Shown piece after piece: positions 1-43,677 of a stretch of DNA of 64,000 nucleotides. The DNA lies in sequence record NC_029316.1; one strand, written 5' to 3'. Position numbers and translations under genes: made by a program. How positions within the stretch are numbered: the first letter of the stretch is position 1; each line of letters opens with the position of its first letter. The notes beneath the pieces were generated by a model. The model saw only the letters and a list, made by a program, of their open reading frames with translations. It was not told the DNA's origin and did no database searches.

Positions 1-111
1 CTGATTGACGACAGCCATGTTTTAGTGAAGGTCTATGAAGACGATCAACCGATTTTCACCATTAAGTTTCAGCTTAATGGTGAAAAGTTAGAAGTTGTTG
101 AGGCGTGGTAA
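1..111 (+). CDS. 3' end of a small hypothetical protein, paralog of 39116-39373
   Basis: Frame 1 reads LIDDSHVLVKVYEDDQPIFTIKFQLNGEKLEVVEAW*, which aligns by eye with VIDSDTMLIKVYGGDEPTFTIKARLVGGKLEVVDVR. Confidence 0.75.
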   Translation: MIDDSHVLVKVYEDDQPIFTIKFQLNGEKLEVVEAW

Positions 112-135
112 CATGGAAAAGCGGGGCGAAGATCC

Positions 136-519
136 GTGGAAAAAGAAATTAGTTTATTGTTAAAAATAATAAAATTCCTCCTAAAGAGCAAAAAGGAATT
201 TGAGGTTACCTATGAAGAAGGTGAAGGAGAGAAGTATGAGGAGGAAGATTTCAAAAAATTTTATTCTCCTTCTATCGAGCTAGAAATTAAGAGCGAAAAT
301 GCACTCAAACACGATATTATAGAAATGTTGGAGAAAAATGGATTTTATTTGGCTAACGGAGCTGAGAATATCGATGTTTATGAAAAGGAAATATATGAAA
401 GGACAGGGAAGAAAAGGAAGGTTGCTGTAAGGTTAGTAATCGAAGTGCATTATGATGATGATGATGTATATAAAATTGTCATTTTTGTGAAAAAATTAAT
501 ATGGAGTATAAAGAGTTGA
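136..519 (+). CDS. Hypothetical protein, paralog of 44617-45006
   Basis: 127-aa ORF; shared motif (N/L)GFY(L/P)xNGAEN with the 44617 ORF. Confidence 0.7.
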   Translation: MEKEISLLLKIIKFLLKSKKEFEVTYEEGEGEKYEEEDFKKFYSPSIELEIKSENALKHDIIEMLEKNGFYLANGAENIDVYEKEIYERTGKKRKVAVRLVIEVHYDDDDVYKIVIFVKKLIWSIKS

Positions 520-564
520 CTTTCTCCACTTAATTTATTCTCTTTTTCTAATCGGGGAGGTAGT

Positions 565-1203
565 ATGATAAATGAGAGATGGGACACGGAGAATAGACTA
601 TCGCAGTATATCCCGCTATATCTTTTGCGATTTACTCTACCTAGCAAGTTTTTAGCTAAGGAAAGGACAAGTGTTGACAAAAAGGAAGACTACACTAACA
701 TATTAATTACTATCAACAACGCGTTGGCATCTAAGCTAGAGTCAATAAGACGATCGGTGTACGAAGAAATAGGAAAGGGTTTTGTATACATAGAGTTGAT
801 GGGTTGGATAGCTGTAGACGATAATGGAGTAAATCACGCTAATATTGCCAATAAGAGGATAGTTGATGAATTAACAAAGGTCGTAGAGAGCGGAAAAGTG
901 ACTTTCAGGGACGGCAGAGTTATCTTAATCCCACCACAACTCATTGAGAAATTAAGGAGAACTATAGCAAATCATTATTACGTAAAAGCGATTAGGATAC
1001 TGGTAGACTATGATAACGCTAAGGAGATAATAGAGCAGGCGTTAAGTCAGCTGAGGGAAGGAATTGAGACTTTACAACAGAAAATTCAGGAAGCTGAAGC
1101 TGAGAAGAAATTAGCATCGCTCAGGAAATATCAGTCTGACAGACAAAAAATTGAAAGACTGTACGAGTCGTTTCTCGATTTCTATAAGGCTAGATTCTCC
1201 TAA
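565..1203 (+). CDS. Hypothetical protein with C-terminal coiled coil
   Basis: 212-aa ORF, SD-like GGGGAGGT upstream. Confidence 0.75.
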   Translation: MINERWDTENRLSQYIPLYLLRFTLPSKFLAKERTSVDKKEDYTNILITINNALASKLESIRRSVYEEIGKGFVYIELMGWIAVDDNGVNHANIANKRIVDELTKVVESGKVTFRDGRVILIPPQLIEKLRRTIANHYYVKAIRILVDYDNAKEIIEQALSQLREGIETLQQKIQEAEAEKKLASLRKYQSDRQKIERLYESFLDFYKARFS

Positions 1204-1241
1204 TTTCTGTAATCACACCTGTGTTCTCGGGGTGGTGTTTT

Positions 1242-1379
1242 ATGGAAATAAGTGAAATAAATGAGCATATAAAAGAATTAGATAAATTGGTAAGTTCAGG
1301 TAACATAAAGGATGCGTTATTTTTAGTTCAAGTAATATATGCAGAGCTATACAATATATATAAGGTTTCTGTGAGGTGA
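1242..1379 (+). CDS. Small 45-aa protein directly upstream of the Tas-like gene (not in ORF track)
   Basis: GGTGGTG SD then ATG: MEISEINEHIKELDKLVSSGNIKDALFLVQVIYAELYNIYKVSVR*; its stop overlaps the SD (GAGGTGA) of the next gene. Confidence 0.6.
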   Translation: MEISEINEHIKELDKLVSSGNIKDALFLVQVIYAELYNIYKVSVR

Positions 1380-1385
1380 GCAAAA

Positions 1386-2417
1386 ATGAGTGAGGTAGAC
1401 CTCGTACATTTAAAAGACCTAGTGGAGTTCAGGGACGACATAATAAAGTTAAGAGTAGCGTTAGGAAACAGGATAGGTGCTAAAAAAGAGAACAATAAGT
1501 GGGTATTCCTAAGGAGATATTCAGTATGCAACAACCATCATATGATATTACTCAAGGAAGACGAAAAACGCGATAAGTGTCCCCTCTGCGGTCAGCCCGT
1601 CAAAATTATTGAAGAAACACCATCTAATGACCTCATAGAGAGGTTTATGGATCTGCTCAGACAACAAGAGATAGTTGAAGGGCTTATTGGTAACGCTGTT
1701 ACGAAATTCCCAGAATTTACTAATTTCTTGGCGTTTATTCGAGGAATAGGATCTGCTAACGCTGGAAGACTTCTCGTTTATGCATACCCACCAAAGTTTC
1801 AGTACAGCATCAATAAATTCAGGAAGTACGCTGGTTTAGCCGTGATGTTCCAGTGTCCTAAATGCGGATATTATTATTACGCTGGTGAGTCCTCAAATGG
1901 TAAACCTGCCCTTCCATCAAAAGACGGTTGGCTGTGTCCAAATGACGGTACGAAACTTATTGGTACGTCAGCGAAGAACGTCAAGTACAATAGGACTGTT
2001 AAGACATTTTTACTAGGAATTCTGGCTAATAACCTCATACTGGCAGGCGGTGTTTATGCAAAGATAATAAAATCATTTAAAGAAGAAATAGCATCTAAGC
2101 ACCCAGACTGGAATAAGCTAAGAGTACAGAGGACTGCGATTAGGAAAGCAATATCCTTATTGATATCACAATACTTTGCTATCTCTTTACATTACCGCGA
2201 AGGAGTACCATTACCTGAGGCTTACAAAGTAGTGTTGGGGAAAGAATACGAAATCCTCAGAAAGCACGAAGATTTCATTGAATCGCCAATTACAGACTAT
2301 TACGTTGACACGAAGACTGTAAAATATAAAGCTAAGTTTGAAAAGATATTGGAAGAATTAGGTATAAACAGAGAGGAGGTGACAACATGGCTGAAGAAGA
2401 AAAAGATTATTAAGTAA
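1386..2417 (+). CDS. tasA: TIGR-associated Nop-domain protein (TasA-like; IS110-related, no RuvC), with two Zn-ribbon insertions
   Basis: IS110/Nop hallmarks: coiled coil LKDLVEFRDDIIKLRVALGNRI, HhH-like FIRGIGSANAGRLL, KFRKYAGL, KYNRTVKTFL and C-terminal QRTAIRKAISLL. No N-terminal DEDD domain. Inserts CNNHH..CPLC and CPKC..CPND. A dual-spacer array starts 1 nt after the stop. Confidence 0.8.
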   Translation: MSEVDLVHLKDLVEFRDDIIKLRVALGNRIGAKKENNKWVFLRRYSVCNNHHMILLKEDEKRDKCPLCGQPVKIIEETPSNDLIERFMDLLRQQEIVEGLIGNAVTKFPEFTNFLAFIRGIGSANAGRLLVYAYPPKFQYSINKFRKYAGLAVMFQCPKCGYYYYAGESSNGKPALPSKDGWLCPNDGTKLIGTSAKNVKYNRTVKTFLLGILANNLILAGGVYAKIIKSFKEEIASKHPDWNKLRVQRTAIRKAISLLISQYFAISLHYREGVPLPEAYKVVLGKEYEILRKHEDFIESPITDYYVDTKTVKYKAKFEKILEELGINREEVTTWLKKKKIIK

Positions 2418-2418
2418 C

Positions 2419-3346
2419 TGCACATAAGCAATATAGTTCGTCAATAATTGCCGTCCTGCACACGAGCAAAAAGTACGCTCAATAAACGCGATATTGCACA
2501 CAAGCAACATATACGTTCAATAAGATACCCATTGCACATAAGCAATCAGCTATTTCAATAATTAATGTACGTGCACACAAGCAACCTGATTGTTGATAAA
2601 AATACCAACTGCACACTAGCATTCTATCCTTTCCCTAAGGACTTAGTTGCACACTAGCAAAATATCCATTCAATAATATTTATATTGCACATAAGCAACA
2701 GGTCTATTCAATAATAAATACGTTGCACATAAGCAAGCTAATAATTCAATAACGATATCTTTGCACACGAGCATTATCATTCCTCAATAACCGTGAAGTT
2801 GCACAAAAGCAATAAAGAGTTTCAATAAAATTGCTCATGCACACAAGCAAGAGAAAACTTCAATAAAGACGTTTATGCACACAAGCAAAGATACAATTCA
2901 ATATCGAAAGATATGCACATAAGCAATCAGCTATTTCAATAATTAATGTACGTGCACACAAGCAATTGCTATGCTCAATAATAGTCGAATTGCACACAAG
3001 CAAAATAATCATTCAATAAACACCTTATTGCACATAAGCAATAAGTATAGTCAATAAACACCCCACTGCACACAAGCAATAACATTATTCAATAATATTT
3101 ATATTGCACATAAGCAAGAAATATCTTCAATAAAAATCACCCTGCACACAAGCAATGAGGTAAGTCAATAACAATCTACCTGCACACCAGCAAAGATAAA
3201 GATCAATAAAAAAAGTTTTGCACATAAGCAACCAGGCTATTCAATAAACCGCATATTGTACACAAGCAAATATAAAGTTCAATAACGGCAAACTTGCACA
3301 TGAGCAAGGGTTGGTTTTCAACAAGAATCCTATTGCACACCTGCCC
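2419..3346 (+). repeat. TIGR-like dual-repeat/dual-spacer array, 24 units of 38 nt (25 edge repeats, the last degenerate)
   Basis: Unit = TGCACAYAAGCAA (13 nt) + 9-nt spacer A + TCAATAA (7 nt) + 9-nt spacer B. Edge repeats at 2419, 2457, 2495, 2533, 2572 ... 3257, 3295, 3334; three units are 39 nt because one spacer is 10 nt. Confidence 0.92.
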
Positions 3347-3369
3347 TTCCAGAGCGGGGAGGAAGTCAG
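3340..3369 (+). mobile_element. IS200/IS605-type right-end remnant
   Basis: CCTGCCCTTCCAGAGCGGGGAGGAAGTCAG: GC hairpin + GGAGGAAGTCAG, typical of Sulfolobales IS605 ends; near copy on the minus strand at 39066-39094. Confidence 0.6.
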
Positions 3370-3371
3370 AA

Positions 3372-3821
3372 ATGGGCAAATTTGATAAAGAATTAATAGA
3401 TATGGTTAAAAAATTAATACAAAAATCTTCTAGTAGCCCATACACAAAAGTAGGTCTTAGCATTTCTGATGAGCATAGGCTACAAAAAATCGACCCTGAG
3501 CTCTATAAACAATATTATGACACAAAAATGATGATAGAAAAGAACAGGGCTGAATTCAAAGAAAGTATTCTTAAATTAATTGATGATATTAATAATGGAA
3601 TTCTAGATAAATATGGTGCAAGGGCGATTTTAGATAGGTTCGATGAGAACGCCATCAACCACCCAGGGTACTATTGCATATCAATAAAAATGAAGAGATT
3701 GCCACGTGAGCAGTTTACAGAGCTTGTTAACAAACTTAAGCAAATAGGGTTCAAGTTTAACGGCTATAATTGGGAATACTGTGATATTATTGGCAATTAT
3801 CCGCGTTTGAGAAAGTCTTAA
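3372..3821 (+). CDS. Hypothetical protein (149 aa)
   Basis: Start moved from 3294 (inside the array) to ATG 3372, which follows a GGAGG SD. Confidence 0.7.
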   Translation: MGKFDKELIDMVKKLIQKSSSSPYTKVGLSISDEHRLQKIDPELYKQYYDTKMMIEKNRAEFKESILKLIDDINNGILDKYGARAILDRFDENAINHPGYYCISIKMKRLPREQFTELVNKLKQIGFKFNGYNWEYCDIIGNYPRLRKS

Positions 3822-3871
3822 AACCGAAGAATCGTAAAAAGCTGAGATTAACGTTTTATATAATTTGGTAC

Positions 3872-4138
3872 CTAATTCTGAATCGTTTCGTTCTCCACTA
3901 TGTCGTCCCCATAATATTCTCTCAATTCATTTATTACAACTTTAGCTATGTCGTCCCCATAATATTCTTTCACCTTTTTGATAAGCTCCTTCAAGTCGTC
4001 ATATATTTCTGCGAAATCACCGTCAATAGTAAAGTTGACTAGTATATATTTACCATCAGTGGTCGGTATTACCATTAGACCTTGATCAATGTTTCTGATT
4101 TTAACTTCAAATGGCAGGAATTTAATTGTTAGATACAT
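3872..4138 (-). CDS. Hypothetical protein with short internal repeat (KEYYGDDI x2)
   Basis: ORF track; MYLTIKF start preferred. Confidence 0.65.
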   Translation of the reverse strand: MYLTIKFLPFEVKIRNIDQGLMVIPTTDGKYILVNFTIDGDFAEIYDDLKELIKKVKEYYGDDIAKVVINELREYYGDDIVENETIQN

Positions 4139-4307
4139 TTTCCTTCCCAAGGATTATGTTTGTTTTAAGTTTTTAAAGATAGTAGTTGTGGGCTAGCTCT
4201 ATCATGATTGAAGTGTAGGGACAAACGGAAATCGGGGGTGTTGTTTCAAATGGAAGAAATTGAAAAGTTAAAAAAGTTGAATGGAAAGGAGACAAAAAAG
4301 GTGATGG

Positions 4308-4565
4308 ATGGTGAAGGTTAAGATACCATATAAATTCCTAGAGGAAAATACATGGTGCGATAGTGACTACTATGGTTGTAGTGGTAGTTGTAGCCACTGC
4401 TATCCGTATGCTGAGAATACTGTTTATGAAGCAGATATTGACGACGTCAAGTTTGATAGAATTGACCTGGAAGATATAGTTGATGAGTACTTAGATGACA
4501 TTATAGATATACTAATGACGAAACATAGGAAGGAATTAGAAAGGAGGATGAACAATGGAACGTGA
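4308..4565 (+). CDS. Small Cys-rich, acidic hypothetical protein
   Basis: CDSDYYGCSGSCSHC cluster; GGTGA SD. Confidence 0.65.
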   Translation: MVKVKIPYKFLEENTWCDSDYYGCSGSCSHCYPYAENTVYEADIDDVKFDRIDLEDIVDEYLDDIIDILMTKHRKELERRMNNGT

Positions 4566-4890
4566 AGACTTTATAGAATACCTTGCAAATTCTGCGTCAG
4601 CTATATTTGACCATAATCAGACAAAGAAGCTTATCGATTATTTTCTCTCGATCTATGGATTATACAAAATGAGAGGGGTTACCATGTCTGCTGATAAGAT
4701 TTACAGATACATTATTAGATCTGTAAAACTCCCATATAGACAACAAGTAATCTTGTACAGCATTTTTTCCGATTATAGTATGCTGACACATGAAGAGAAA
4801 GGAAAATTTTTATACGTACTTATAGAAAAAATGATAGACAAGTTATTGGAGGGTGCTGATGAAGCGGATAATAAACCTCGCATATTCTAG
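4555..4890 (+). CDS. Hypothetical protein
   Basis: 111-aa ORF overlapping the previous stop. Confidence 0.65.
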   Translation: MEREDFIEYLANSASAIFDHNQTKKLIDYFLSIYGLYKMRGVTMSADKIYRYIIRSVKLPYRQQVILYSIFSDYSMLTHEEKGKFLYVLIEKMIDKLLEGADEADNKPRIF

Positions 4891-5117
4891 GGAAGAACTA
4901 AAAGTGCCGACTAAAAGTTTATATTTTTCGGGAAAGAAGTTAAAATAAGGAAGAACTAAAAGATGGGGAGAGCGGGAGGGGTCGTCGTAGCGGGAAGTTG
5001 CCCCGCCTCTTCCAAGGGCGGGGTAAAATTTTAGTTGAAATAAGGAAGAACTGAAATAAAACTAAATGGGAATACTCAACATTCCACTATATAGTTGAAA
5101 TAAGTAAGAACTGAAAG
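4881..5117 (+). CRISPR. Candidate virus-borne mini-CRISPR array (3 full 24-nt repeats + 1 degenerate)
   Basis: GTTAAAATAAGGAAGAACTAAAAG 4939-4962, GTTGAAATAAGGAAGAACTGAAAT 5034-5057, GTTGAAATAAGTAAGAACTGAAAG 5094-5117, partial ending 4904; spacers 34, 71 and 36 nt; 3' GAAAG as in Sulfolobales repeats; no cas genes in the window. Confidence 0.6.
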
Positions 5118-5171
5118 ATGTCAGCTCTAGTTATTCGTTTTTATAAAGGGTGAATTGGTATTTTTCTCGGG

Positions 5172-5951
5172 GTGTTAAATGTGGAAAGTCCTTCCCCTTC
5201 TCCTTATACTGTCTCTAAAGAAGCAATGAACTTTCTCAATGTTTTCTTTTCAAATAAGCCGATAAAAAACGAGAAGGTTATAATAAACGCTCTTAAAAAT
5301 GGGTTTGTAAGCAGTGTTATCCTTGATATATCTCCTAATGCGTTAAGCGAATTTGAGGATATCATAAAGAAATATTTTGATGTAGACCTTATCGACGACG
5401 AATATTACAAAACTGTAGAGCTGGGTATTATAGCGATGGTAATAACACTACTGGCTCATAGAGTAAGGTTAATTGAACTGCAAGATTTAGCCGAACCGCT
5501 AAATAAATACGCTTCTTACCTTTCATCACTAAGGTTTAAAGCACCTAAAAAGGACGTAATGCCATTGTTAGCCCTAGGTCTTGTAACTGAAGAAGGTGGT
5601 GGGTTCTATAAGGTTACTGGTCTTGCATTGTATCTCATTAATTTTTTATTAACAGTAAATATGAGCATCACATTACCTAAGGCATGCCTGAAAGAGCTTA
5701 TTGAAGATTTGAATAACATACTGTTGTTTCATAAATTTATGGTCGAACGTGTGACTAGCTTGCTTTATGAAGCACCTTGGTCATTGTATTCAGCGTATCA
5801 CGGTTCCAGCAGTTACGATGACTTAATGGCTGAGCTTGATTTCGAAAGCATATTAAATACGCTAAATCTATTGAGGGAAAAACTAAAACCACCGTACAAA
5901 TATGAAATACCAGTAATTATGGGAGAAAGGAAACTTTCTCAATTAATTTAA
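5172..5951 (+). CDS. Hypothetical protein
   Basis: 259-aa ORF, GTG start. Confidence 0.7.
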   Translation: MLNVESPSPSPYTVSKEAMNFLNVFFSNKPIKNEKVIINALKNGFVSSVILDISPNALSEFEDIIKKYFDVDLIDDEYYKTVELGIIAMVITLLAHRVRLIELQDLAEPLNKYASYLSSLRFKAPKKDVMPLLALGLVTEEGGGFYKVTGLALYLINFLLTVNMSITLPKACLKELIEDLNNILLFHKFMVERVTSLLYEAPWSLYSAYHGSSSYDDLMAELDFESILNTLNLLREKLKPPYKYEIPVIMGERKLSQLI

Positions 5952-5966
5952 AACGGGGCGAAAAAA

Positions 5967-6848
5967 ATGAAAGTTGAACTAGTTTCTTATACAAAAGATG
6001 GAGAAAGAGTTGTTGCCATTGCTTCTAAGATGAGCAGGTCTAGAAAGGGTTGGGATTACCACGAGAAGACAATGACGGATGAGGAAGTAGAAGTATGGAT
6101 CCGTGACGCTATCATTCACGGCTATTGGTCACCACTAGAACACAGTAGTTATACCTTCTCAATAGAGGGTATAAGCAGAGTTGCCTCTCATCAGCTAGTG
6201 AGACACCGCATTGCATCATACACTCAAATGAGCCATAGGTTTGCTAAGCCCGTTGATGAGTACTACCAACCAGTAACTCCGCCTTCTGCGGAAAAGAGGA
6301 ACGAGGAACTAGTTAAGAAGGCTTACGACGACGCTTACAAATACTACTACGAGCTATTACAGAACGGTGTTCCAGAGGAAGATGCCAGATACGTCCTACC
6401 TAATGGAGTAAATACAAACATCGTTGTGACAATGAACGCCAGAGAGTTATACAACTTCTTTGCCCTAAGACTATGCTCAAGAGCACAGTGGGAAATACGT
6501 CAAGTTGCTTGGAAAATGCTAGAAGAAGTAAAGAAAGTCCATCCCCGTCTATTTAAGTATGCTGGGGCTAATTGTATAATATTAAACAATTTAACTAGTG
6601 ACAGACTGATGACTGTAGAGAACGTCCTTAACGGAATATGGAGATTTGAGATTAGCAGGTGTCCAGAAGGCGTATATCGTGATGGAATACCTAAGTGCAT
6701 ACTTTCCAGCATGGGTCTTGCTGACCTATATCAGTGCATTCATGACTGCAAAGTTCATTTTGGCGACCCTGGTGACGACGACAGTGGTTGCATAGCCTGG
6801 TGTAAGAAAAAGTACGCTGACGGCTTCATAGGACAAGGTGGGGCATGA
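5967..6848 (+). CDS. thyX: FAD-dependent thymidylate synthase ThyX
   Basis: ThyX signature [14 protein letters not shown]; HWSPLEH-like GYWSPLEH; EDARYVLP; [23 protein letters not shown]. Confidence 0.95.
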
Positions 6849-7507
6849 TGGTTTCAGTAGTAGATTTAATAAAAGAACATTTAGATTTTTTAAGCATAAA
6901 ATATATTATAACTAGAGAAGCCGATACAGAATTCACTTTTCATCTCGATTACATCTCTAAAAACAAAGTTAATGTACTGTCAAAAATACTAAGCGAGAAC
7001 GGATTTTTTGTGACTTTCAATAATAGTCAATACATAGTAATGATGGATAAAAATGGGCAACGTGTAAGTTTTATGTTTGGTGATGATTTGCTGTATAAAA
7101 TAAGGGTTTATACTACAGCAAAGCCTAAGCATTTTGCAGTAAAGGTGCATAGGTTAAGGAGTGTTAGGGTACAATATAGAGACGATATTGTTGAACACAA
7201 CAACATTATAATTACATTAAAGATCTCAAAGAAAATCAAGGATTTGCTTATTTTATATTCACGCAAAATAGGTAAAACTGCTGGCGAATTAATACGCTGT
7301 ACGCTTGCTAATACTATTTTAAAAGAGTTTGATGCCGATTACGATGATAAGAAGCTTCTTGACGGTGATATTAGTGTGTTGTCGTTAAAGATAAATAAGA
7401 AGTTGTTAGAGAAGCTCGACAATTTTGCAACAAATCATAAAGTTACGAGGTCTGCAGTGGTAAGGTACATAGTGTACTTGATACTTAAAAACGCAGGAGT
7501 ATTCTAA
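6845..7507 (+). CDS. Protein with two C-terminal ribbon-helix-helix-like repeats
   Basis: [13 protein letters not shown]...TAGELIR and [17 protein letters not shown]...[10 protein letters not shown]. Confidence 0.65.
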
Positions 7508-24770: not shown

Positions 24771-26984
24771 TTAGCGGTTAAGGTATTTTGCAACATATGC
24801 CAAAGCGAAACCGAATACCGCACCAGGTAGCAATGCATAAAACCCAAAAATTAACGAAATTGCTATACTAAGTAAACTCCATATCATTAACCCGTACCAT
24901 AGGACTCCAGTTATGTTATAGTTCCTGTTGATAAGATATATCGCGATACCACCGCCTATATAGTAAATTATTATATCCATAAGCTGGTTTGAATTGATAC
25001 TTATACTGAACGGGTTCTTAATTGGTGGTGGCGTAAGTGATGTACTACTATTAACCTTAGTTGAATTGAGGTTAACTAGTTTGTTAACATAAGGCTGAGA
25101 GGTTTGTATACCGTTGGCATCTATTGTTACTGTCCTACTTGTAGGCGATATTGCTAATACAAACGGCGTATTAGCAGGTATATTCAGCGGGTAGAAGCAC
25201 GAAGACACGATGAATTGCTCCTGGACGTTTTGGTAAACTAAAGTTACTGAGTCACCGTCCATACCCTTCAATATAAGTGAAGAAGAGGAGTTAGAAACAT
25301 GATAACACGACAGTTTACCGTGAGAGTAACAAACTACTAACCCAGGACTTGTTATTCCGTTTATTATTGCGGAACATGCTTGGAACGGAGAAGTGACAGA
25401 GGTCTTTATTATTCCAGATATTTCGTCATATAAGCCAGTTGCTAGAGTGACACCTATCTTACTAATAATGAGAGGAGTATTACTATACGTCACATAGTGA
25501 ATGTACGGAACTACGTTGTAAATCGTATAAGGTGATGCAGAAATGAATTGGGTAACACCGTGATCTGTTACTACTTGAACTAGAAGATACTGCGTGTTTC
25601 CTACTCCTTGTACACCTATAATTACGTCTGCTGGAAAAGTAACATTTCCTAGTGAAGTTAATACAGTGCCGTTAACACATAAATACGCTTTGCCGTTACA
25701 AATGTTAACATAGTATGCACGCACAAAATCGGTGAACCCTATCTTTGCGTCATATTTAATGTTGGAACATGGAGGATAAATTAATATGTCCGAAATACCG
25801 CTACCATAACCTATTACCAAATTATCTTCAGCTATTCCCACATTATTTACCTTATTAGAGACATATATGCATTCAGACGTACCGTTTGAATACGATACAA
25901 TAACCTTACTACCTACTGGTACGCCGAATATTCTCACACATGATGTATTGAACGCACAGTATGCTACAAAGACCTTAGGTTTAGATGAGACCACAACGTC
26001 GCACACCACCTTCCCAAGGTTTACCATTTTTCCGTTCTCGTATGCATAAAAACAATTTCCTTCTATTAATGAGGGCGTAAATATTACGCTTGCTTTACCC
26101 TCTATGCATTGGGAACATGAAGGCTTGCAGTAATATACTGCAATAAGATTGGTAGAAATATTACAGCACGGCTTTTCCGATGGGGATCCTTGAATTACTG
26201 TACCGCATACTATAGTGCATTTACCCTCTTCGCTTATTTTAACAAAGCATGTTAATTTCGTGTATAATTCTGCACTATTTACCTTTACAAACCCGCTCTG
26301 TTCTACATCAAAATTATTGCTTAGTATACAGTTTGTGAATATAGTTTCGTACTTACCAGAGAATATGTAATAAGAAGGTATTTTCACTTTTTGTGATGTC
26401 TGCAAATAATCGAAGAATACCCCAGTACCAGGCTTTACATTAGCTATCTCATAAAAATTATTGGTAGACACTGAGGAAGGAAGGATGTTATACATAAACA
26501 CAACAGAGCTGGAAATATAACGGCTAATAGACGGCTGGAAATAGAGATGCGAATTATTACCCATTGTAAGCAGACCGTCAGCCTGGACATTAGTTGCGTT
26601 CCAAAGTGTGGTGTTTAATATATAGAATGTAAATAGGTTACTAAATACGTTACATGTAACATATTCACTAGTTACTCCAGTTCCATATGTTAGTAGTAGT
26701 GACTCGTTATTCAACCCAGCTATATAGTATACTAAGTATGGCGGATATGTTGAAAACAGGTAGCTATCGACATAGTACCCGCACTGATTTATAACATAAT
26801 ACTGGCTTTGTATATTTGCACTTGGTGGGAGTGGGGCAAATAGTATTATATCGCTACCAGCCAACGATGAAGGGGCATTTACTGTTATTTGTATTTGATA
26901 GCTTACTGCAGTAGAATTTAACGAAAGTAATAGTAGAAATAGGAAAGAGAATAGTATGAGTGAAGAAACTAATTTCTTTAACAT
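24771..26984 (-). CDS. Secreted/membrane-anchored beta-rich structural protein
   Basis: 737 aa; signal peptide, many N-x-S/T sequons, Cys-rich, three C-terminal TM helices. Confidence 0.8.
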   Translation of the reverse strand: MLKKLVSSLILFSFLFLLLLSLNSTAVSYQIQITVNAPSSLAGSDIILFAPLPPSANIQSQYYVINQCGYYVDSYLFSTYPPYLVYYIAGLNNESLLLTYGTGVTSEYVTCNVFSNLFTFYILNTTLWNATNVQADGLLTMGNNSHLYFQPSISRYISSSVVFMYNILPSSVSTNNFYEIANVKPGTGVFFDYLQTSQKVKIPSYYIFSGKYETIFTNCILSNNFDVEQSGFVKVNSAELYTKLTCFVKISEEGKCTIVCGTVIQGSPSEKPCCNISTNLIAVYYCKPSCSQCIEGKASVIFTPSLIEGNCFYAYENGKMVNLGKVVCDVVVSSKPKVFVAYCAFNTSCVRIFGVPVGSKVIVSYSNGTSECIYVSNKVNNVGIAEDNLVIGYGSGISDILIYPPCSNIKYDAKIGFTDFVRAYYVNICNGKAYLCVNGTVLTSLGNVTFPADVIIGVQGVGNTQYLLVQVVTDHGVTQFISASPYTIYNVVPYIHYVTYSNTPLIISKIGVTLATGLYDEISGIIKTSVTSPFQACSAIINGITSPGLVVCYSHGKLSCYHVSNSSSSLILKGMDGDSVTLVYQNVQEQFIVSSCFYPLNIPANTPFVLAISPTSRTVTIDANGIQTSQPYVNKLVNLNSTKVNSSTSLTPPPIKNPFSISINSNQLMDIIIYYIGGGIAIYLINRNYNITGVLWYGLMIWSLLSIAISLIFGFYALLPGAVFGFALAYVAKYLNR

Positions 26985-41931: not shown

Positions 41932-43677
41932 GTGACTGAAGTATACCTATTAAATCTATACCCAGGAACGATAACGGTAACTGTAACGGACAAAACAAAC
42001 GGTAACTCAGAAACATACACGCTGTCAGAATACCAAACTATCGATATAACCAACCTTATTTCATCATGTTATGATTGTCTATGTATCAAGGTGAACGGAA
42101 ATTCACGTGGTTGGACTTTGCCACTAAGCCTATTTCCTAGCAGGGCTATTACCATTACTCCTCTAGCTTCACCTGACGGTTCCCCACAGATTAGTATTTG
42201 GAGTACTTCACCCGAAGTTGCACTAAGAGACTGGCTTACAGGTGTAATAGCAGGAAATATACCAACATATCTTTCTGACGCATATCAGGAAATCTCGTCC
42301 TTGATTTCGTTATACAAATCTGGGTCTAGTATATCAACTGCAAAACTCAAGTCAATACTTCAAGAAATATATGACTGCTTGCAGAACGCAATAAACTTCC
42401 AAAAACAGGCTGGAGTTAATTTCGAAGCCATAAGTGCGTGGAGCCAAATTTATCAAAATCTTACAACAATATGTGAGGAACTAAATAATGGAAAACTAAC
42501 TGCAAGTAGCTTACAAAGTCTAAGGTTACCTTCTTACTCTTGTAATTTAGCACAAGCATGTGCAAAAGAATATTGTAATAATCTGAATAACTTCATTTCC
42601 TCTTTAAGTACAACGCAAAGTTCTACGTCGTCAACTAATACGACACCAACTAGCTCTACGCCTTCACCAACTAGTACGACACAGCCGACATCATCTAGCT
42701 CTACACAGAGTTCTACGTCGTCAACTAGTACAACACCGTCTAGTACTACTAGTTCCTCTTCTAGTTCTACACCATCGTCTAGTACTACAAAGACACAGCC
42801 GACATCATCTAGCTCTACACAAAGCAGTACTACACAAAGTACTACGCCATCGTCACCGTCTAGTACGCCATCGCCTAGTACAACGTCATCATCTAGCACT
42901 ACACCATCGTCTAGTACTACTACACCAACTAGCTCTACGCCTTCACCAACTAGTACGACACAGCCGACATCATCTAGCTCTACACAGAGTTCTACGTCGT
43001 CAACTAGTACAACACCGTCTAGTACTACTAGTTCCTCTTCTAGTTCTACACCATCGTCTAGTACTACGCCGTCGTCACCAACTAGTCCTACAACCACACA
43101 ACAGACATCATCTAGTACTACTAGTACAACGCCTTTACAACTATTGCAGGAGGCAACGCCGTCTAGTTCTACACAAAGTTCTACATCATCAACTAGTACA
43201 ACGCCGTCATCTAGCTCTACACAAAGCAGTACTACACAACAGACACCATCTAGTCCTGCAACGCCTTTACAACTACTGCTGGAGAACGATTATATTACAT
43301 TCGAAAATGAATATCCGCAGTATGCAACGTTAGCAAATGTTCTTCAAAATACTCCTGGTCTTACGTTGTCTCAAAAAATATCTACACTTAAACAACAGTT
43401 TTCTGCATATGCACAGCAAGCTTACCAGGCTTTACTTGGTGGGGATAAGCGTAGTGCTAAATATTATGCTAAACAAGCTAACTGTATATTGAATGCGTTA
43501 CAACAATACTCTCAACTATCTGGACAGGACTGCTTAAGTGAATTACAACAATATATACAAGAGCTTAGTAACGTAAATAACGTAGTTTACGATACTGCAT
43601 CACAAGTACAACCTTTAGTGTTAGGCACACAGCCAGCCCCAGTTAGACCTGCACCTAATATAGAAATATTACAATAA
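41932..43677 (+). CDS. Three-part protein: N-terminal domain, Ser/Thr-rich linker, ESCRT-III/PspA-like C-terminal helices
   Basis: GTG start; long S/T/P tract; C-terminal AQQAYQALLGGDKRSAKYYAKQ resembles the ESCRT-III/PspA helical hairpin; matches my recollection of an ATSV gene. Confidence 0.7.
   Translation: MTEVYLLNLYPGTITVTVTDKTNGNSETYTLSEYQTIDITNLISSCYDCLCIKVNGNSRGWTLPLSLFPSRAITITPLASPDGSPQISIWSTSPEVALRDWLTGVIAGNIPTYLSDAYQEISSLISLYKSGSSISTAKLKSILQEIYDCLQNAINFQKQAGVNFEAISAWSQIYQNLTTICEELNNGKLTASSLQSLRLPSYSCNLAQACAKEYCNNLNNFISSLSTTQSSTSSTNTTPTSSTPSPTSTTQPTSSSSTQSSTSSTSTTPSSTTSSSSSSTPSSSTTKTQPTSSSSTQSSTTQSTTPSSPSSTPSPSTTSSSSTTPSSSTTTPTSSTPSPTSTTQPTSSSSTQSSTSSTSTTPSSTTSSSSSSTPSSSTTPSSPTSPTTTQQTSSSTTSTTPLQLLQEATPSSSTQSSTSSTSTTPSSSSTQSSTTQQTPSSPATPLQLLLENDYITFENEYPQYATLANVLQNTPGLTLSQKISTLKQQFSAYAQQAYQALLGGDKRSAKYYAKQANCILNALQQYSQLSGQDCLSELQQYIQELSNVNNVVYDTASQVQPLVLGTQPAPVRPAPNIEILQ
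42643..43067 (+). repeat. 146-bp direct duplication inside the Ser/Thr linker
   Basis: 42643-42788 repeated at 42922-43067. Confidence 0.85.

Follow-up and report, generated by a model that had tools for sequence, protein, structure and literature searches.

The window analysed here (64,000 nucleotides of record NC_029316.1) is, over its first 6 kb, 100% identical to Acidianus tailed spindle virus (ATSV), whose 70.8-kb circular record (KU645528.1) has its base 6813 at base 1 of the window. The open reading frame at 1386-2417 (+) is ATSV_B343, a protein of 343 amino acids that GenBank labels "hypothetical protein" and that is 100% identical to UniProt A0A125SJ55, the match found in a search of BFVD. 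The stretch immediately 3´ of the gene carries only the GenBank label "repeat_region". Based on the reading frame, the GenBank record, Foldseek, profile matches and NCBIfam, we annotate the gene as tasA, encoding a nuclease-free TIGR-associated Nop-domain protein. The repeats that follow it (2419-3340, +) are annotated as a dual-repeat TIGR array of 24 units plus a terminal truncated edge repeat, as judged from the repeat sequences, their period and their conservation in homologous loci.

The array begins one base after the tasA stop codon. Each unit consists of the edge repeat TGCACAYAAGCAA (13 nt), spacer A (9 nt), the loop repeat TCAATAA (7 nt) and spacer B (9 nt), giving a period of 38 nt (39 nt in three units), and the edge motif TGCACAYRAGCAA, allowing up to one mismatch, occurs 23 times versus 0.29 expected. 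This is the arrangement of a TIGR array, with two alternating repeats and two ~9-nt spacers adjacent to the gene, at a period of 38 nt where 36 nt is canonical. Apart from the 13-nt edge repeat and the 2 nt added per unit, it matches the dual-repeat architecture reported by Faure et al. 2025. Between the end of the array and the ATG of ATSV_B149 lies a conserved 25-nt motif, CCTTCCAGAGCGGGGAGGAAGTCAG (3345-3369, +), found once in the window versus 0 expected. The motif is also present upstream of a 39%-identical tasA homologue (locus L005) and of an unrelated gene in contig L002, and its link to the TIGR-Tas system is uncertain. The second region that GenBank lists as a "possible viral CRISPR locus" (4891-5180) was considered as a second array and rejected, being neither TIGR-like nor CRISPR-like and having no Rfam match.

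Single-sequence searches of Pfam and the PDB with ATSV_B343 returned weak zinc-ribbon matches only, and the homology of the protein therefore had to be approached through profiles. A large clustered protein collection contained 71 homologue clusters, nearly all metagenomic, with the full-length members 60-99% identical, and an exhaustive profile search returned 305 remote relatives at E<=1e-3. A profile built from ATSV and 58 relatives matched TaTasR (E=1e-51), SpTasH (2.6e-29) and IS621 (3e-6). Against the NCBIfam model TIGR_Tas_endo, ATSV_B343 itself scored E=1.8e-11 and 44 bits, under the curated cut-off of 100, and two of its remote relatives scored above the cut-off. An AF2 model built on the homologue alignment was confident (pLDDT 87, pTM 0.75), and its best Foldseek match in the PDB was TasR (9mty, E=1.3e-5), followed by TasH (9vzx, 7.7e-4; 9w03; 21kl), with the bridge recombinases IS621 (8wt6/8wt9, 4e-3) and ISCro4 also among the matches. 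In the BFVD fold search, the model matched itself and then phage "IS110-family" proteins. An earlier note made from the letters alone had called the product a Tas protein, and this is borne out by the fold matches to TasR, TasH and IS621 and by the family profile. The Foldseek and profile matches also identify a Nop-type C-terminal RNA-binding domain homologous to that of TasR and TasH.

The order of elements in the model, assigned by DSSP, is a helix (residues 3-30), an all-beta segment (31-78), a second helix (81-105), short helices (109-149), another all-beta segment (154-197), a helical core (203-292), a floppy loop (293-310) and final helices (311-338). The two long helices form a coiled-coil hairpin ahead of the Nop domain, the kind of hairpin through which Tas proteins dimerise, both at high pLDDT: helix 1 is encoded at 1392-1475 (+; pLDDT 86-96), and helix 2, at 1626-1700 (+), is the counterpart in the alignment of the helix leading into the Nop C-terminal domain of TaTasR and SpTasH. 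The first part of that domain (residues 106-153; 1701-1844, +) was placed by alignment and by the Pfam matches of relatives, which hit Transposase_20 (the IS110 C-terminal domain) in this region. It carries G120-x-G122 and Y148-A-G-L151, and G120 and G122 are the sole invariant columns among 59 distant relatives. The helical core of the domain (residues 198-275; 1977-2210, +), comprising helices 203-220, 223-238 and 244-272, aligned to TaTasR and SpTasH.

Just two residues precede the coiled coil in the model, which leaves no space for a domain at the N-terminus, nor is one predicted. For HNH, RuvC and DEDD domains, no Pfam match to ATSV_B343 was obtained even at E<=10. The model and the Pfam search thus confirm the initial reading that the protein starts at the coiled coil and has no RuvC, DEDD or HNH domain, and the absence of any HNH or RuvC fused to the Nop domain is the mark of the TasA subtype. 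Membership in the IS110 family, defined by a DEDD N-terminal domain and a catalytic Ser, does not apply, given that there is no N-terminal domain and that the only candidate Ser pair is unconserved outside the ATSV family; the NCBIfam model transpos_IS110 gave 13.8 bits versus a cut-off of 140. Nuclease-free Tas proteins have already been described as TasA, the commonest TIGR effector (PMC12045711), and the protein is therefore not the new subtype that had been suggested. DNA binding and transcription repression by TasA without cleavage are documented experimentally, with reporters repressed or activated by TasA in two 2026 preprints (bioRxiv 10.64898/2026.09.09.750476; 10.64898/2026.08.11.744272). 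We consider it probable that ATSV carries a dual-repeat TIGR-Tas system whose effector, ATSV_B343, belongs to the nuclease-free TasA class, with occupancy rather than cleavage of the target as the outcome. The binding-only reading rests on finding no nuclease and, as proposed from the letters, a repressor or roadblock would be the best description by analogy with TasA relatives that bind or repress without cleavage. ATSV TasA is an uncharacterised representative of a known class, with lineage-specific decorations. Faure et al. 2025 (PMC12045711) already include A0A125SJ55 in a supplementary alignment and refer to the ATSV paper in connection with the array and with TIGR loci of archaeal viruses.

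The decorations include two inserts, for which we judged ligand conservation in an alignment of 23 homologues of ATSV_B343. The first, zinc ribbon 1, is at the tip of the coiled-coil hairpin (residues 31-80; 1476-1625, +) and is all-beta in the AF2 model. Its letters are C48-N-N-H51-H52 ... C65-P-L-C68; C48, H52, C65 and C68 are invariant in the 23 homologues and H51 is variable, which gives the motif C-x3-H...C-x2-C. The module and its position within the coiled coil had been correctly recognized in the earlier note, while the motif given there, C-x2-H/H...C-x2-C, has to be revised. In remote relatives, the position of H52 is occupied by Cys (CPAC, CESC, CPVC, CHKC and others).

The second insert, zinc ribbon 2 (residues 154-197; 1845-1976, +), is the loop after YAGL, a putative "wedge", placed by alignment and by its all-beta model. 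Its ligand set, C157-P-K-C160 ... C184-P-N-D187, begins five residues past Y148-A-G-L151, and all four ligands are invariant in the 23 homologues, as is the loop G-E-S-S-N-G-K-P-A. CPxC-G replaces CPxD-G in relatives, with D187 being Cys in the nearest outgroups. Profile alignment sets the insert opposite the Ser loop of IS621 (...AGLTPRRYESGSS...) and a 16-residue loop of TaTasR, in agreement with the original suggestion of a second metal insert after YAGL at the IS110 Ser-loop position. The S169-S170 pair is invariant in the ATSV family and is not kept outside it. A model of the wedge by itself (pLDDT 82) was all-beta, and a Foldseek search of the PDB with this model found nothing better than E=0.9 and no nuclease; the weak matches were zinc modules of MCM, TFIIE, eIF2-gamma and Trm1.

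CxxC pairs often frame HNH domains, the wedge insert lies exactly at the position of ...YESGSS... in IS621 in the profile alignment, and ...GESSNG... is invariant within it. These observations would fit a protein that cuts or recombines DNA through a catalytic centre hidden in an insert, either an HNH-like tip (C-x3-H...C-x2-C) or a nucleophile at S169/S170. We regard this as very improbable. Neither the tip nor the wedge module contains a helix, which makes a beta-beta-alpha-metal fold impossible, since this fold has, besides its catalytic His, a metal-binding Asn or His that is borne by a helix. At 50 and 44 amino acids, both are also too small for RuvC. The interchange of H52, the only invariant His of the inserts, with Cys in many relatives, and of D187 with Cys in outgroups, points to structural metal ligands rather than catalytic residues. 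S169/S170 are not conserved in two relatives (P0072 and P0073), the hairpin is far shorter in other zinc-wedge relatives, and there is no DEDD domain to complete a composite site of the IS110 type. Nuclease matches were likewise absent from Pfam and from Foldseek with the whole model or the wedge alone. A cryptic nuclease in the inserts was accordingly rejected on the Pfam results, the all-beta models, the ligand interchange and the wedge-only Foldseek search. The caveat attached to the first reading, that a cryptic HNH or RuvC fold might reside in the inserts, thus came out negative, by fold search for the wedge insert and by sequence and ligand logic for both.

Both inserts look like metal-binding, structural zinc modules, judging from the ligand patterns and the predicted models. 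The published anatomy of Tas proteins includes a "tip" insertion in the coiled coil and a "wedge" insertion between CTD1 and CTD2, and inserts 1 and 2 of ATSV TasA are taken here as the putative equivalents by position. Among the nearest 145 cluster representatives, a two-knuckle tip module is present in 24, a two-knuckle wedge module in 17 and both in 11, and in sister sequences YAGL is followed by a plain loop of 27 aa. The zinc ribbons would be structural additions to the Tas scaffold at two variable places, the coiled-coil tip and the post-YAGL loop. Most likely they would stiffen tip and loop at about 80 C, and they may also provide a larger surface for holding the heteroduplex and for parting the DNA strands. 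The TIGR-Tas papers compared, including Faure et al. 2025 and the TasA preprints, make no mention of zinc, and no pairing of tigRNA with zinc was found. Within that literature, the zinc modules are the part of ATSV TasA without prior description. The clade of TasA proteins with these modules is also an exception to the statement, made in a 2026 survey, that dual-repeat Tas proteins retain a compact core.

The C-terminus contains a further candidate functional element. SpTasH processes its own guides via Y289 and H296 in a flexible C-terminal loop (PMC13421893), and the Tyr/His dyad, which acts in metal-independent pre-tigRNA processing in the CTD5 loop, is reported to be conserved in dual-repeat systems. 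The alignment of ATSV_B343 with TaTasR and SpTasH reaches about residue 300, and the CTD5 region (2211-2315, +), assigned by alignment to SpTasH, includes a flexible loop at residues 293-310, with low pLDDT at 301-320. SpTasH Y289 and H296 align with pY......H of the profile, and ATSV Y280 and H294 occupy these columns with a 7-aa insertion between them, so that the Tyr-His spacing is unlike that of SpTasH. H294 is invariant and aligns with H296. Y280 is in the aligned column, 14 residues before H294, and Y288 lies 6 residues before it and is kept together with H294 in the closest outgroups. Part of the C-terminus is thus a candidate Tyr/His processing loop, with the choice of Y280 or Y288 as the Tyr being ambiguous. 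About 45 amino acids follow the conserved His, of which about 33 (residues 311-343; 2316-2414, +) are truly extra and form a clade-specific two-helix hairpin (311-325 and 329-338) with a basic tail. Remote relatives of the zinc clade, P0077 and P0081 among them, have the hairpin too, and most other relatives lack it. An unexplained C-terminal extension of ~70 aa had been noted previously; its size was overestimated, part of it is the candidate CTD5 Tyr/His loop, and the extra segment is the hairpin at 311-343.

At the RNA level, the edge repeat has the form UG...CAA and the loop repeat UC...UAA, with an initial U and a final AA in each. At these box C/D-like ends, we saw no obvious covariation at G-C versus C/U, unlike the description of TasR arrays. 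Folding of single units gave only a closing stem of 3-4 bp, GCA(A)/(U)UGC, between the edge halves; one more closing pair would account for the extra 2 nt per unit. The array had no match in Rfam, including none to a C/D sRNA. Tas proteins are homologous to Nop5/Nop56/58 and the archaeal host possesses box C/D sRNPs, such that the system could conceivably act on RNA or on the host box C/D machinery, through RNA targets or by competition with Nop5 sRNPs. Several results speak against this: the AF2 model of ATSV_B343 is without an N-terminal fibrillarin-binding domain, the units are without K-turn-type C/D boxes and fold weakly beyond the closing stem, and the Rfam search was negative. In addition, every characterised Tas targets dsDNA, with its two spacers on opposite strands (including bioRxiv 10.64898/2026.08.11.744272). 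An action on RNA or box C/D sRNPs is extremely improbable in our judgment, more so than a hidden catalytic centre.

Related loci show the same pairing of gene and array. The same repeats and period were found on the same strand 3´ of tasA in 12 of 12 IMG/VR loci and in two 50-kb JGI contigs (L002 and L003), the encoded proteins being 72-89% identical to ATSV_B343, and the more distant homologue in L004, at 65% identity, is accompanied by such an array with 3 units. The related arrays (n=15) contain 205 distinct spacer pairs, almost all lineage-specific, which together with the shared repeats indicates repeat conservation with spacer turnover. The remote zinc-clade relatives P0077 and P0083, the two examined, adjoin ordinary 36-nt dual-repeat arrays. 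The flanking genes of ATSV are shared by one locus only, an ATSV strain, and the flanks differ in 11 of the 12 related loci. No conserved partner gene, ParB-like or other, was detected beside tasA in the related loci, and the neighbours gave no informative Pfam matches. With the flanks differing and tasA alone shared, tasA and its array constitute a self-contained mobile cassette that has no conserved partner gene, and this cassette moves between otherwise unrelated hot-spring viral contigs.

The absence of a conserved neighbour bears on whether the RNP might serve as a recruiter, with the zinc ribbons, the C-terminal hairpin or both docking a host or viral factor such as a nuclease, helicase, transcription factor or integrase. 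Homologues of 60-99% identity show little or no variation in G-E-S-S-N-G-K-P-A, at W182 or in the C-terminal hairpin, which suggests a specific interaction surface, and the weak fold matches of the wedge are protein- or DNA-binding zinc modules of MCM, TFIIE and eIF2gamma. Similar ideas for TasA, aid to an integrase and a ParB-like partner, were put forward by Faure et al. (PMC12045711). Given that no neighbour is conserved with the cassette, however, any partner would need to come from the host. TasA relatives, moreover, repress alone (bioRxiv 10.64898/2026.09.09.750476), and within one clade the zinc wedge is either present or replaced by the 27-aa loop, a pattern that speaks for a decoration the protein can do without. 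Recruitment of a partner is thus quite unlikely, and occupancy by TasA and its guide is the reading we prefer.

For targets, we searched the whole ATSV genome with the 24 ATSV guides in both half-site orders and found no excess of self-targets over shuffled spacer pairs. The best self-site, with 9/9 and 7/9 matches at window position 25828, inside a 737-aa ORF, was not above the shuffled-pair control. The 205 guide pairs likewise showed no enrichment of 18-mers over shuffled pairs, in either half-site order, when matched to related viral DNA totalling about 250 kb. In IMG/VR, six scans for exact 18-mers of the most conserved guides gave 0, 3, 0, 1, 3 and 0 matches, a chance level, all on contigs resembling neither ATSV-like DNA nor each other in context, with one match inside an ordinary protein-coding region. 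The same trouble in finding natural TIGR targets is reported in the literature (PMC12045711).

As inferred from the characterised TasA, TasR and TasH systems, the array would be co-transcribed with tasA. By the same analogy, a TasA dimer would bind each unit through its edge and loop repeats, and the CTD5 Tyr/His loop would cut within the edge repeats to release tigRNAs of ~38 nt. [quoted passage not shown] Without a nuclease, the outcome would be occupancy, blocking transcription or replication of a competitor element, the host or viral genes.

The closest parallels are with other TasA systems. FpTasA, MbTasA and PlTasA share with ATSV TasA the coiled-coil hairpin and Nop C-terminal domain without a nuclease, an adjoining array with two spacers per unit (dual-repeat, as in FpTasA), the Tyr/His processing loop, for which ATSV has a candidate, and being virus-encoded. 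ATSV differs from them in carrying zinc ribbons both at the coiled-coil tip (50 aa) and after YAGL (44 aa), in a unit of 38 nt rather than 36 nt with a 13-nt edge repeat, in the C-terminal two-helix hairpin and in belonging to a hyperthermophilic archaeal virus. TaTasR (9mty) and SpTasH (9w03, 9vzx), the best fold and profile matches of ATSV TasA, have the GxG and YAG motifs, the helical core and the C-terminal His in common with it. However, they carry N-terminal RuvC or HNH nucleases of their own that are missing in ATSV TasA, and there is no metal site in their short post-YAG loop, which measures about 16 aa in TaTasR and is also short in SpTasH.

More distant systems share parts of this architecture. 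The IS110 bridge-RNA recombinases IS621 and ISCro4 resemble ATSV TasA in the fold of the RNA-binding C-terminal domain, with similarity running via GxG...AGL, whereas ATSV TasA lacks both a DEDD/RuvC-like N-terminal domain and a conserved catalytic Ser. Its locus has no transposon ends and, where those systems use a single bridge RNA, an array of short guides. Archaeal Nop5 and eukaryotic Nop56/58 have a Nop domain, a coiled-coil dimer architecture and two guide segments flanked by short conserved boxes, as in ATSV. The ATSV system differs in having no fibrillarin-binding N-terminal domain and no K-turn/L7Ae-type RNA, and its relatives target DNA.

A bolder proposal is that the zinc tip and wedge, the 38-nt guide and the C-terminal hairpin define a functionally distinct TasA lineage adapted to hyperthermophiles, in which an enlarged wedge, stabilised by metal and rich in aromatic residues (Y162-Y165, W182), would take an active part in melting DNA, or would serve as a docking site for a host factor, at about 80 C. 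We consider this unlikely. If it were true, the ATSV RNP would do more than passively occupy DNA, and ATSV would for the first time make a TIGR system accessible to experiment in an archaeal virus and its host.

The identification itself carries little weight as a discovery: TIGR-Tas, the TasA class and repression by TasA are published, and the ATSV locus and protein are already present in the references and supplement of Faure et al. The value of the analysis is in documenting a deep clade of dual-repeat TasA with zinc ribbons at the coiled-coil tip and the post-YAGL loop, together with the movement of tasA-array cassettes between unrelated hot-spring viruses. It also links a thermostable TasA to a cultivable host, a pairing that could be used to study how TasA benefits the virus.

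Within the ATSV TIGR array, one complete guide, that is, one pair of spacers, is present twice: TCAGCTATT (spacer A) and TAATGTACG (spacer B) occur together at window 2533-2570 and again at 2914-2951. The same spacer A was detected in L007, an ATSV strain, and possibly in other lineages, with the accompanying spacer B shifted, altered by 1 nt or different. Two other ATSV units share spacer B TATTTATAT and differ in spacer A. When the duplicated guide was matched against ATSV itself, its highest-scoring site, at window 25828-25845 (9/9 + 7/9) within an ORF of 737 aa (24771-26984, minus strand), was not above chance.

The region annotated in GenBank as a "possible viral CRISPR locus" (window 4891-5180) was considered both as a TIGR array and as a CRISPR-like locus, and both identities were rejected. 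It contains four to five copies of (TAGTTGAAA)TAAGGAAGAACTRAAA at irregular intervals as well as a GC-rich hairpin (CCCCGCC...GGCGGGG), and no Rfam match was found for it. Separately, imperfect tandem repeats of 18 nt and 36 nt are located at window 42838-43076.

A 25-nt motif, CCTTCCAGNNCGGGGAGGAAGTCAG, was found once in each of three viral contigs: in ATSV between the end of the array and the start codon of ATSV_B149 (window 3345-3369), in L005 at 566-590, upstream of a tasA homologue with 39% identity, and in L002 at 4098-4122 (minus strand), upstream of a MarR-like gene. This motif may be a promoter or leader element common to these contigs. The TasA relative P0072, encoded on L005 (JGI 3300005861), is the nearest outgroup, with 39% identity and both zinc modules, and no recognisable repeat array was detected across the whole 8.5-kb contig.

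For L011 (IMGVR_UViG_3300005860_000274), we observed two inverted copies of tasA with arrays, at 355-1362 (minus strand) and 5831-6838 (plus strand). The contig is palindromic and probably results from an assembly artefact. When the ATSV gene neighbourhood (window 1-6900) was compared with L002, L004 and L008-L016, the tasA-plus-array cassette was the sole common content, with protein identities to ATSV TasA of 72-89% in these loci, but 65% in L004. Among the loci compared with this interval, synteny with ATSV was seen for L007 only. Hot-spring viruses thus appear to exchange the tasA-plus-array cassette horizontally.
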